A stretch of DNA of 64,000 nt from Oopsacas minuta. Its lineage: Eukaryota; Animalia; Porifera. Below are positions 15,001-21,000 of this stretch, one piece after another. Within the stretch, counting starts at the first letter, position 1. Each line of letters starts with the position of its first letter. The translations under genes were made by a program, and so were the position numbers. The notes under the pieces were generated by a model that was not told the origin of the DNA, ran no database searches, and saw only the letters and a program-made list of their open reading frames with translations. The stretch covers positions 620,001-684,000 of the forward strand of contig JAKMXF010000299.1 in NCBI GenBank assembly GCA_024704765.1, given 5' to 3'.

Positions 15001-18000
15001 GTATTTTATGCGATTAAAATTATCCACAAATACTACTTGGTTGAGTCAGACGCAATCGAGAATATCGAGATTGAAAAAGATCTCCTGATTAGGTACGGGA
15101 AGCATGACTATTTAAGCGGCTTGGTGGCCACATTCCAGGATGAATTCAATGTATATATAGTGCTGGAGTATTTAGGAGGTGGAGATCTATTCAATCTGGT
15201 CAGTAAGGAACATAAACTTCCTATAAAATCGGTTACATACTATGTTGCAGAAACTTCCATGGGTCTGTTCTATCTCCACAATAAAGGCGTAATTCACAGA
15301 GATCTGAAGCTTGAGAACATAATGTTAACGCTAGAAGGACATGTCAAAATCATTGATTTCGGATTGTCTCGAGAAGGCATTTTTAAGGGGAAACATTTCA
15401 CTCGCACCTTTTGTGGTACCCCCACTTATATGGCTCCTGAGATTATGAACCGTGGATTTTATGATTCCGCTGTGGATCTCTGGAGTCTTGGTATTATTAC
15501 ATTTGAGCTGCTTACTGGGTTGATGCCATACAATGGATTCGATGTGCATACTTTGAAACCACTTGTGAAAAGATTGCCTACTTTCCCTCATACTCTCTCC
15601 ATTCCATCAGTCGTGTTCATCTCCCATCTCCTCAAATACACCCCCACAGAGAGACTCGGGTATAATCCTGTCAGCGGAGAGGCTAGTTTTAGAAACAGTA
15701 CTTTCTTTGGAGATTTACAATGGGAAGAACTGGTTGCCCGCAAACTGCCTCCTCCATCTAACCCCCTCGTTTCTACTTCATCAGATAGAAGCTCTGCTAT
15801 TAAGTTTGAAATAAGTACTGGAGAGCCTCATCACAATCTCGTCATCGATCAGAATGCATTTAAGAACTTTGATTACACTGAACCTGGCTTCTTATCCACC
15901 GGAGCCCCTCTGATGGAATTTTCTGCTCTTGATTAAGTTACGCTCTTCTAACCTGTTCTACTTTGTGTTATCCCTTGGCTACTATTCTTAAGCTATACAG
16001 TACATTAATTCTATTTTGCTTTCATAATGTATTGATTACATGTACAACTCTAATTCATGACTACCTTGAAAATTATGTTTCTGCACATCTAGTCTATTCT
16101 ATCTGAATATTCAATCTCTTTGAGTAGCGTATTGAAAGTAATATATATCTTAGTATCAAGTCTACATTGTTTCTTAAAACTGCCTCTCTGCAGTTATGAA
16201 TTGAAAAATGTGGATGCTGAGACACTTTGTATAGTTCATAATTTATTGAAATGGTTTGACGTTGAGATTTAGGAATTTATCGAAAATACAATGGCTAAAG
16301 TCAATCCTGTTTACTTAAATCCAAATCTAATGTAAATCCTAAAGAGTGAAAAGGAGCGCGATCGTGTTCGGTTAATTATGTATCATGAACATAACTAAAA
16401 AAATAAATCTTTATCAATATATCTAGATGGTAGAATATACAGAATGGACTAATTAATCATGTTAGCCACTTTTATCTTTTGATAATGAATTAATTGATGT
16501 CCGAGCTTTATACCATTCTCACTGAACTCTGACCTTCGTTCATAACTCATACCAGTTTATCGATGAATTCGCACTGATAGATTTATTTATTACATCATGC
16601 TAATACATACAGTAGTACATTCAACGTACTTAGATACTTTCATTCGGTCGAAATATGTCCTAATTGCATATTTTACATTCTATAAATGTTCATGTTAACA
16701 TCAGAATACTAGTCTTCTATGCAAACCACATCAGCTGTTGTTACCATAGTCGATTCTTGAACCTTAACCTCCAATTTAATAGAGCTCATATAGAGAAATG
16801 TGATTAGATCATTGGAGTATTTGTATTGTTGATAATATGGAGAATTTATTTTATATACAGCTTAGCATCCAACAGCTTTAAGTGGTAACCGAGTGCTCAT
16901 GATACGATTCTGAATTTCAAGCTATAAATAAGTGTACATATATACGTAATGATGTTATCAAATGCTAATGGTATTTTCGTACCTTTTGGATTCCTCATTT
17001 TACGCCAGAGATTAAATACAGTATTATAAGTTGATTAAATCATGTTAATACATTCAATTGTAGATTTAGAATGATATAATATAAAATTATTTCCGATTTT
17101 AAATAGTGTCAATGTTTGCATATTTCTCTGTTCTTAGCTGATACAGCTTGTACAATTATCCTTGTAGCTTTAGCTTTAGGTGCATTTCTTCCATTGCAGT
17201 ATTTTGTATAGGTTAAATTCTACATGAGTAGTACTTTATACATTCAGATTTATTTCTAGTAGTCTTATTGTATGAGTTGGATGCCCTATTCAAATTACAG
17301 TTACCACTGTTTGCAAGGTGTTCCCAGTTGTGTATATTCCAATAGCACTTTCCATTTGAACCTCATATTTTTTACAATATACATGTTTGATTCAAATTCT
17401 TTTACAATGAAACTTTGAATTGGGGCTAATGGGAACATGTTACCTCTTCCTTATTTGTTCATCCTCACTTAAAATTATTTGGGATTTTCAATTCTAACGC
17501 ACCCCAGCCCCGATTAGTACGAACATGAATATACATTATCTTATTATGGAAAGTAGAAGTACACAGTGTGGCAATATGGGAAATAGGCATATTTTAAAAA
17601 ACATATTTCAATGCATTTTTCGAATTCTCCATAGTTCAATTAGTACGAAAATATCATTGGCAGCATTAGAAGCAGTTAGGAATCCTAACTACGCACAACT
17701 TTGTTATGTGTTTCTAATAATAGAAATATATATTTTCAAACCTCAAATTCCTATGCCCTAATGTATGTAATCATATTTGATGTAAATATTAAATATAAGA
17801 GTGAAAAACATCTTCTGATAATAAATCTATATTGTAACAACAATTTAATCATTGATAGGTTAGTCTAGATATTCATTTGTACTTTTTTCCGGGTGTCTAG
17901 TTTGGCCCTCCCAAAGTTATAATTTGGAATTTTTTCTCATTGATTGAAGTGTAGCATCTCTTGTTTGACAAAATTTGACAAAACGTTATTAATATATAAG

Positions 18001-21000
18001 TAATGTTACTATATTTAGTCAACTATTTAATCACTTTCCAGGCTTGCCAAAAGCTGCCCAAAAATTTATCACGTCATTCATTGTCCGGACCGGACAAAAA
18101 TCCGAAAAATATATTTTTCATACGTTTTAAATTTTTTCAGTAAAATTCTATATTTTGCTGGTTATTAGTTATTCCAATACTCTACAATCATATATCATAA
18201 TGTTTCTATGTTAAAGTAGCCCTTTTGCGGATCATGTCTGTACTAATCACCAACAATGAGGCATATAGTTTGTATATTTCGAATGGAAGAAGTGTTACAG
18301 TCTCTGTTAGGAAACTTATTGAGAACAACCATTTATCCGAAGAAGAAACTGCTACTCTTCATTTAAAATTTAAATCACTTCTAACATCCAGAGAGGCTTA
18401 CCGCAGGAAGGATCTTGAAACATGGGATAATATGATTTTCCACTCTACTCATCTAACAATATCCAATCCAAGAAAGAGAATATCGCTTGATCCTGAATTT
18501 TCTTTAGTCACTGATTCTGAAAATCGAAACTTTTCAGAACAGATTGTAACTGAATCCCGGAAGCATATTCTCGAATGTCACATGAAGACTTCCAGATCGA
18601 GACTTGGTGTTCTTTTAGAGCATGTGGACTTTTTAGCAGAGAGAGAAAAGATTGAGCCTAAACAACTACTCGCTCTAGCTTTAGAATTAGTCTCAAATAA
18701 ATCCTATGACCGTGATACTTCAGACATGTGCAGAGAAATAATTGATAAGGGATCTTTTAGCGGTGTATTGAACAAAGTACAAATCTCTAAATGTGCTTAT
18801 ATATTGGACAGATTAGAAATTGGGGCGAGTAAATACACGAATCTGAAAAGAATTCTCAAAGGTGATGTTAAGCTTCCTTCCTATAAACTTGTCTCGCAAT
18901 ATCGTAGGGAAATAAGCCTAATAAATGAAATGGAAATAGTCAGAGACCCCGAAGCATTGTCAATTGGGACTTGCGTCTCTTATCATTCCATCCTTAGTCT
19001 GACCATTCAACGCTTGCTTTCAACATTAGACCCAGTTCCTGATTCACACTACCCACTCAAAATTAAGATATCTGATGGATTGGATGGCTCCGGTTGTCAT
19101 CAAACCTATAACCAACAAAGCAACAATTCTGCATTAAGCACAAAAACTTTCATTTTGTTCGGATTCAAAGTAATATCAATTACAGACACACTTGGAAATG
19201 ACGTGTTCTATAACAGCTCACCCAACTCTCCGTTCTGCTTTAGGCCAGTAGCACTGATAGCTCTGAAAGAAGATTATTCTAGTGTAAAGCTTATCATGAA
19301 TACAATAGTCAATCCTCAAACAGACCATATCATACAGGATGGGTTATCTCTTATTGGAGGCCATGCACAGGTCGAGATAGTCCGTTCCCTTTTTGATACC
19401 AAGATGGCAGGATTGCTGGATGGAGCTGGTGGGGCTTCTTGTCATCTGTGTACTGCAACGGATAGCCAAATTAAAAGTTTAGAATGGGCCCATTCTGGTT
19501 TCCCTATTAACAGACTAATTAGCGACGCTCGGCAACTTTTTGAAGAGGTTGATGAAGAAGATTACTTGAAACTCCCATCAAATCAACGTGTTGGTATTAC
19601 GCATCAACCAACTTCTAACATCGATATTATAGCTGCATCTCCTTTGCATGCTTACCTTTGTGTATTCAGGTGGTTCATGCTGTTGATATACCATCTTGAT
19701 GCAGGACACAAGGTATGGGCGCCATCAAACTCGAAAGTAAATTTTTCCATGAAACGGGTTCGAGCTATACTCCAGGAAAGATGTAATTTCAGTGTCGATA
19801 TCCCTTCAAGCCAGGGCGGCACTTCAACCACTGGTAACATTGCGCGAGACTGCTTTTTAAATAAGAGAGACTTTTTGACGTGGGCCACTTCTTCCATTAA
19901 TCCTTCAGATAAAATATCATTAGAGAAGATCCAGACAAATCTATCTGTTTTGTTAAGACTCCTCAACAGTGGTGACTTGATTAACTGTGACAAAATGCAA
20001 GAATTGTGCAAAGAAACGTACGAATTTATTCTAATTGAGTACCCATGGGCAAGCATCACTCCATCTTTGCACAAGTTACTTGCCCATTCGTTTCAGTTAA
20101 TAGGTGCTTATAATAATGGTAAGGGATTACAGAATCTCTCTGAGGAATGTTTAGAATCCTGCAATAAATTTGTAAGGCGGTATCGGGAGAATCTTGCAAG
20201 AAAAACTTCTTTCACTGATAATGTTAGAGATATTTTAGTCAGGTTGTTATGTTGTAGTGACCCCATCTTAGTACAGAATCGTTTGATGCACGCAAAGAAG
20301 AAAAGAGACGTTGCAAATAGCCTCCAAGAGATATTATATAATAGTATACTATCAGATGATTTATGATAATTAGTATATCCAATAGTCATACATAATTAAG
20401 GGTCTTTAAATTGTACGTTATCAAATAGCAGAATAGAGACCATGACATGCATGTATTATCAACTTTCATAATATCCTCACTAATGAACCACAAGTGTTAA
20501 AAATTAGAAAATGTCAGTAATTACGTCATAACTAGGTTTATAGTCGTGCTACTAAATAATCATTGGTATTTTTGAAATCTACAGTGTCGATTTAGTATAT
20601 GTAAGTATAATTGTGGCGATAATACAGATTCATTTACCTATTTCCCCATTATGGCCATTTTGCCACACTGTGAAGTAGACTTGCACCTTACAACACTTTA
20701 GATAGCTAGTTTACCTGAATTAATTTTTGTAAACTTTCCTCTTTTCTCTTACATGTTGTTATTCAAATATCATGCCCAATATGTTTTATTACTATTATCT
20801 TACATCAGCAATAATTTTTCCCATACAATCGCTTTAATATTCATTAAATTATCTGGTAATGTGAACTTATCGCTTTCACACATTCCATCTATCCTTACAG
20901 GATATTGTGCAACTATATTTTCAGTGATATTTTAACATTTTATGGTAATGAGGTACTCATTGCTATTGCTTTGTATTGTAACGAGGTATGCACTATAGGG

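Follow-up and report, generated by a model that had tools for sequence, protein, structure and literature searches.

A Transib transposon in a glass sponge

The stretch of DNA analysed here, i.e., 64,000 nt from the glass sponge Oopsacas minuta (hereafter the window, in whose positions the coordinates are given), holds at 17562-20672 one copy of a young, multi-copy and autonomous Transib DNA transposon with a single gene. The two ends of this element are unlike, as an inner box found at both of them lies deeper at the 3′ end than at the 5′ end, and the difference is 9 bp in this family and in the six others compared with it. It is almost certain that the element belongs to Transib, given that it combines a RAG1-core transposase nearest to Transib, a DDE catalytic triad with its zinc ligands, terminal inverted repeats (TIRs) with a CAC heptamer, a target site duplication (TSD) of 5 bp and a single gene. 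The open reading frame (ORF) of the transposase is the only long one in the 3.1-kb element and the only one of at least 80 amino acids (aa) on the sense strand between the ends. Among the ORFs of the element we found no RAG2-like (kelch/PHD) second gene between the TIRs, which designates it as a Transib and not as a RAGL (RAG1L-RAG2L) element. A previous sequence-only reading of the locus had described a RAG1-like, single-gene transposon devoid of RAG2, bounded by exact CACAGTG heptamers and a perfect 5-bp TSD (AAGTA). The heptamers and the TSD are read directly at both ends and the absence of a second gene holds; "RAG1-like" is right for the core of the transposase, but the element itself is a Transib, HzTransib being its best match.

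Read directly, the 5′ end runs from CACAGTG (17562-17568) through 12 nt to AAATAGGCA (17581-17589), and the 3′ end, followed inward on the minus strand, from CACAGTG (20672-20666) through 22 nt to AAATAGGTA (20643-20635), i.e., the inner box of this copy sits 10 bp deeper at the 3′ end. An inverted-repeat search reported the two arms separately and with unequal inner distances, hence the same 10-bp offset. Heptamer pairs flanked by an identical 5-mer occur twice in the window (the element at 17562-20672 and a second one at 47287-49083), compared with a single pair in total across 20 shuffles. We refer to the family of the first element as F1, to its diverged relatives as F2, F3, F4, F6 and F7, and to the second element as F5N; all mapped features are collected in Table 1. 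Apart from these, a solitary CACAGTGTCGCAA at 42038-42050 has one mismatch to the F1 terminus, with neither partner end nor TSD, and is compatible with chance (0.7 expected).

Table 1 Mapped features of the F1 copy and of the second Transib in the window
Feature	Position	Strand	Source
TSD AAGTA, 5 bp, left copy	17557..17561	.	read directly, heptamer-pair scan
5′ heptamer CACAGTG, holding the first base of the element	17562..17568	+	read directly, repeat search
Proximal box TGGCAA, F1-specific, same at both ends	17569..17574	+	copy and end alignments
5′-end inner box, TATGGG + AAATAGGCA	17575..17589	+	copy alignment, read depth, end alignment
A-tract, 5′ end only	17596..17601	+	read directly, end comparison
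Transib transposase gene, 710 codons + stop, single exon, intact	18234..20366	+	ORF list, protein searches
Homologue of the RAG1 nonamer-binding domain (NBD), residues ~105-178	18546..18767	+	alignment, profile, structure model
D284 codon, first catalytic Asp, aligned with RAG1 D600	19083..19085	+	
D388 codon, second catalytic Asp	19395..19397	+	
E637 codon, catalytic Glu, aligned with RAG1 E962	20142..20144	+	
3′-end inner box, AATGGGG + AAATAGGTA	20635..20650	-	read directly, copy and end alignments
3′-specific 9-bp insert AATGGCCAT, not in the 5′ end, sequence kept across families	20651..20659	-	end alignment, shift test
3′-end proximal box TGGCAA	20660..20665	-	read directly, end alignment
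3′ heptamer CACAGTG, holding the last base of the element	20666..20672	-	read directly, repeat search
TSD AAGTA, right copy	20673..20677	.	read directly, heptamer-pair scan
F5N, second Transib, internally deleted, non-autonomous, 1797 bp, TSD CTAGA	47282..49088 (incl. TSDs)	+	

Transposase and its relation to RAG1

A Pfam search of the 710-aa protein gave no match even at E = 1 and none to the RAG1 N-terminal domains, so the family was placed via solved structures. Among these, phmmer ranked HzTransib first (E = 1e-26), followed by amphioxus BbRAG1L (E = 3e-4), and a profile of 32 sequences returned HzTransib (E = 1.3e-75), BbRAG1L (7e-57) and RAG1 (4.5e-37). The profile spans mouse RAG1 361-1005 in one continuous alignment, and its positions 103-172 match the isolated RAG1 NBD structure 3GNA (E = 4e-4). 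D284, D388, E637, C403, H613 and H618 are invariant across the 32 sequences and C406 is kept in at least 90% of them, the conserved zinc ligands being C403/C406/H613/H618 (C2H2). D281 was considered as a catalytic Asp and dropped, as both the alignment with RAG1 and a wider one favour D284. A protein identical or nearly identical to this transposase is already annotated in O. minuta.

The AlphaFold2 (AF2) model used here was built from the 32 sequences and has a predicted local distance difference test (pLDDT) score of 88; it supersedes an earlier one from 12 sequences (pLDDT 62, below 50 in the NBD region). Its fold matches HzTransib (Z = 34.4) and mouse RAG1 (Z = 32.5, model 105-687 on RAG1 390-1007). 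Residues 105-178 superpose on RAG1 390-464 with pLDDT values of 81-91, and the alignment of the solved HzTransib chains begins no earlier than model residue 179. As modelled, the transposase spans the whole RAG1 core, including an NBD homologue that is missing from the HzTransib structures. At the position of the RAG1 GRPR motif the window protein reads SRKH and its clade xRKP, GRPRK being found only in distant relatives.

A C-terminal Cys/His tail (CCGHC, CTT1) is absent from the window protein, F2, F4 and F6. A CCGHC-type knuckle is kept in the clade members P0002, P0003, P0004 and P0011 and was lost in other members of the sponge clade, the family of the window included; the 9-bp end asymmetry is present in families both with and without it. 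At the other extremity the AF2 model predicts a small helical domain (residues 1-72, 18234-18449, pLDDT 81-94), which a disordered linker (residues 74-105) connects with the NBD-like region and to which nothing corresponds in the RAG1 and HzTransib chains of the alignment.

Copies, age and activity

We fetched nine full F1 copies of 3.1 kb each for comparison, among them the window's own (L002, on contig JAKMXF010000299.1). They are 99.7-99.9% identical over 3.1 kb and the 710-aa ORF is intact in all nine; one identical protein is encoded at five loci, and the remaining copies differ by one or two residues. The TSDs are 5 bp long and of different sequence in the different copies; they are perfect in seven cases, and both ends are intact in eight. 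The exception is L004, where the 5′ heptamer is mutated to CGCAGTG (1830-1836) beside a still perfect TSD (GGCCG), and this copy is probably immobilised. At L007 the flanking 5-mers are unlike (AATCA at 1823-1827, AATTG at 4940-4944), possibly owing to mutation or to recombination between copies.

Word depth, summed in public runs from the same organism, was within the element 120-330 times the flank value, which points to many copies without counting them. Near-identical copies with intact 710-aa ORFs indicate that the family is young, as the sequence-only reading had supposed; it appears recently active and is plausibly active at present. No sign of an empty allele or an excision was found in Logan contigs, which drop rare variants: each junction is present at flank depth, and none of the contigs bridges the two flanks. 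Copies 90-95% alike to the window transposase (18200-20672) occur in runs X5 and X6 (organisms B and C), so the family is common to related hosts or populations, and one contig of X6 extends to the same 3′ terminus as the window element. JGI metagenome contigs, scanned with the alignment of the family, yielded no relative.

A 9-bp difference between the ends in seven families

Eight of the nine full F1 copies read GGGG in the 5′ inner box where the window copy has GGG, i.e., one G fewer, and 14261 of the 14480 depth units in public runs have the extra G after 17577. The offset of the F1 family is therefore 9 bp (13/22 by the box boundaries of the sequence-only reading), and the 10 bp which that reading had noted is real in the window copy only, through a private loss of one base.

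In total seven families were compared, i.e., F1, its diverged relatives (38-46% protein identity) and F5N. F3, F4, F6 and F7 come from ENA assemblies, and we infer that their host is another sponge, as the only named relatives of a neighbouring TRAF gene are O. minuta proteins (40-57% identity). When the ends are aligned jointly by MAFFT, those of the 5′ side are set apart from those of the 3′ side in all seven families by one gap of 9 columns following position 13, and an ungapped shift test clearly favours 9 in F1, F2 (two copies), F3, F6 and F5N. The short end lies 5′ of the gene in all families, CACA.TG is invariant in the 14 ends, and perfect TSDs are also found in F3, F4, F6, F7 and F5N. 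From family to family the six proximal bases and the inner box vary, but they match between the two ends of each, and beyond ~40 bp from the tips sequences are no longer alignable among families. F5N, in which the transposase is reduced to its first ~60 codons at the N-terminus (ORF 47916-48101), is of a different family from F1 and has the same 9-bp offset. The sequence-only reading had proposed aligning the ends of further copies, symmetric ends being what would count against it; the asymmetry recurs in 9/9 copies and in all seven families and, as judged from these alignments, is conserved.

The ends differ in other respects as well. The A-tract of the 5′ end lies 22-23 bp past the heptamer in four families, 24 bp in F5N and ~28 bp in F1, and is a T-run in F3; its position agrees with the Transib consensus in the literature, a heptamer followed after 23 bp by an A-rich nonamer (PMC1131882). 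At the 3′ end, AAATGTATT stands at position 62 from the tip in six of the seven families, including the non-autonomous F5N, and this subterminal box could serve transposition as a cis site or else be a 3′ signal of the mRNA. Sites reading AAATGTATT(AT) were seen at L010, L012, L013, L014, L015 and window 49012-49022 (minus strand), and F1 carries a related TGTATTATCG ~15 bp closer to the 3′ tip.

What the unlike ends may be for

For HzTransib and RAG it is established that the two ends are brought together by a transposase dimer, which makes a nick at the edge of the heptamer; a hairpin then forms on the flank, and the excised element is inserted with a 5-bp stagger. The overall best explanation, which takes in the identity of the element as a Transib and to which as a whole we would give a probability of about 60%, is that the 9 extra bp between the proximal and the inner box of the 3′ end have been selected as a mark of unlike ends. 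The likeliest reader of this mark would be the NBD-like domain which, dimeric and held on a linker, would bind the inner boxes; as these lie nearly one helical turn apart in register, a 5′ and a 3′ end would pair in preference to two like ends. The parts of this account differ in strength. Judging by its conservation, the 9-bp difference is probably under functional constraint. A pairing preference mediated by the NBD homologue is a tentative proposal, and we are doubtful of the full postulate that the RAG2-less Transib transposase of a basal metazoan enforces the pairing of short with long ends by means of this domain.

The element shares with 12/23-type systems a distance to the inner box that differs by about one helical turn and is conserved among relatives, as well as an NBD homologue in the transposase; it has no GRPR/K motif, nor does an A/T-rich nonamer occur at each end. 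Several points weigh against a spacing rule. F4 and F7 are ambiguous on their own in the shift test, the 9-bp gap fitting them only in the joint alignment, and since the seven families share ancestry, they represent one state retained and not repeated invention. The inner box is GG-rich and not an A/T-rich nonamer, and the counterpart of RAG1 GRPR reads SRKH. The 9-bp insert is itself conserved (roughly AAATGGCCA in the MAFFT end alignment), unlike the spacers of recombination signal sequences (RSSs), and could act as a binding site and not as a spacer. The ends also differ by an A-tract exclusive to the 5′ side and boxes exclusive to the 3′ side. Finally, RAG1 alone loses the requirement for asymmetric substrates, which implicates RAG2 in the 12/23 rule (Carmona 2016, PMC4840297).

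The main rival to an NBD pairing rule is a 3′-specific binding site. The asymmetry would then be functional without being a rule of spacer length, i.e., the 3′ end would carry extra sequence-specific sites (the insert and the 3′-only boxes), and the unlike number or arrangement of sites would direct ordered assembly or orientation instead of helical phasing. Unlike ends with different binding-site arrangements are found in many cut-and-paste transposons. The preserved sequence of the insert, the fixed place of AAATGTATT in six of the seven families and the restriction of the A-tract to the 5′ end are what such extra sites would predict, and the shift test has a secondary similarity at ~17-18 bp, as short repeated units containing GG would give. 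However, the length difference is exactly 9 bp wherever a family allows it to be read, the inner box is common to a family's two ends, as a spacing model requires, and the transposase has an NBD homologue. We regard extra 3′ sites as possible rather than probable.

We think it improbable that the 9 bp are a neutral relic of one ancient duplication in the common ancestor of the sponge families. The insert does resemble its neighbouring segment, as a duplication would, and the families form one clade; yet with proteins down to 38-46% identity and ends unalignable beyond ~40 bp, the gap was never lost, gained or resized, and the sequence of the insert has itself been conserved. A private indel of the window copy has next to no chance, as only the single lost G is truly private and the asymmetry is found in 9/9 copies and 7/7 families. 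Equally negligible is a RAGL transposon or a domesticated RAG1-like host gene, for which the full RAG1 core with NBD and the RAG1L-like CCGHC-type zinc knuckle of some clade members might speak, against a single ORF between TIRs 3.1 kb apart, HzTransib in first place in every search, numerous near-identical copies with TSDs and RAG1 N-terminal domains without a Pfam match.

Bearing on the origin of the 12/23 rule

Ends of the 12/23 kind in a RAG2-less transposase have been in print since 2005 (PMC1131882, PMC9435367, PMC10462144, PMC8355894) and are not a new principle. Kapitonov & Jurka (2005) described Transib families with RSS12-like 5′ and RSS23-like 3′ ends from which the 12/23 rule could be derived (PMC1131882), Yakovenko (2021) founded a hypothesis on asymmetric Transib ends, Tao (2022) reported asymmetric TIRs and an NBD equivalent in Transibs, along with spacers of 4/13 in AanRAGL (PMC9435367), and Martin (2023) assumed an ancestor with asymmetric TIRs, CCGHC and NBD (PMC10462144). 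The sequence-only reading had seen in this locus a candidate early stage of the 12/23 rule; asymmetric ends without RAG2 are indeed there, but the idea had already been published, and a rule of spacer length is only one way to read them.

What the sponge element adds is a length difference that held at 9 bp as the end sequences diverged, and transposases carrying an NBD homologue missing from the only Transib studied structurally. The literature we searched contains no report of Transib in sponges, and the range of the group is extended to glass sponges. The origin of the 12/23 rule, placed with RAG2 by some (Carmona 2016) and in ancestral Transibs by others (Kapitonov & Jurka 2005; Tao 2022; Martin 2023), has been argued from sequence alone, and the sponge clade, with intact, seemingly recently active transposase genes and an NBD homologue, is a possible system for a direct test. 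If the NBD does enforce the pairing of short with long ends, a 12/23-like rule in single-gene Transibs would predate the capture of RAG2, and the young sponge family, in which ORFs are intact and near-identical copies numerous, would lend itself naturally to a demonstration.

Comparison with known systems

With the vertebrate 12/23 RSSs and RAG1-RAG2, the sponge element has in common the exact CACAGTG, an offset of about one helical turn and an NBD-homologous domain. It is a transposon and not a recombination signal, its offset is 9 bp as opposed to 11, within a family its spacers are conserved between both ends, and it has no A-rich nonamer at both ends, no GRPR and no RAG2. AanRAGL (Aureococcus, 4/13) and PflRAGL-A (Ptychodera, 10-bp asymmetry) likewise have bipartite ends, with an inner box shifted by 9 or 10 bp, and a 5-bp TSD, but these encode RAG2L, which the sponge element does not.

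Subgroup I Transibs and the hypothetical RAGL0 ancestor (PMC9435367, PMC10462144) resemble the sponge families in asymmetric TIRs and an NBD equivalent, and also in CCGHC as far as P0002, P0003, P0004 and P0011 are concerned; the window's own family differs in having no Cys/His tail, and the likeness is one of features, not of a tree. HzTransib of Helicoverpa zea (PDB 6PQN and related), which lacks most of the NBD region (PMC4840297), is the best match in sequence and fold, with the same catalytic and zinc residues and a 5-bp TSD, whereas the sponge protein has ~178 more N-terminal residues, including the NBD homologue, and a longer segment after CxxC. The asymmetric insect Transibs (Transib5 of D. 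melanogaster; Transib2_AG and TransibN1-N3_AG of A. gambiae; PMC1131882), by the text of that paper and not by their sequences, have an offset of ~11 bp instead of 9 and an A-rich nonamer instead of the GG-rich inner box, and the glass sponge host and the sequence-conserved extra segment also set the sponge element apart from them; what they share with it is a single gene, the CAC heptamer, the 5-bp TSD and a short 5′ end facing a long 3′ end.

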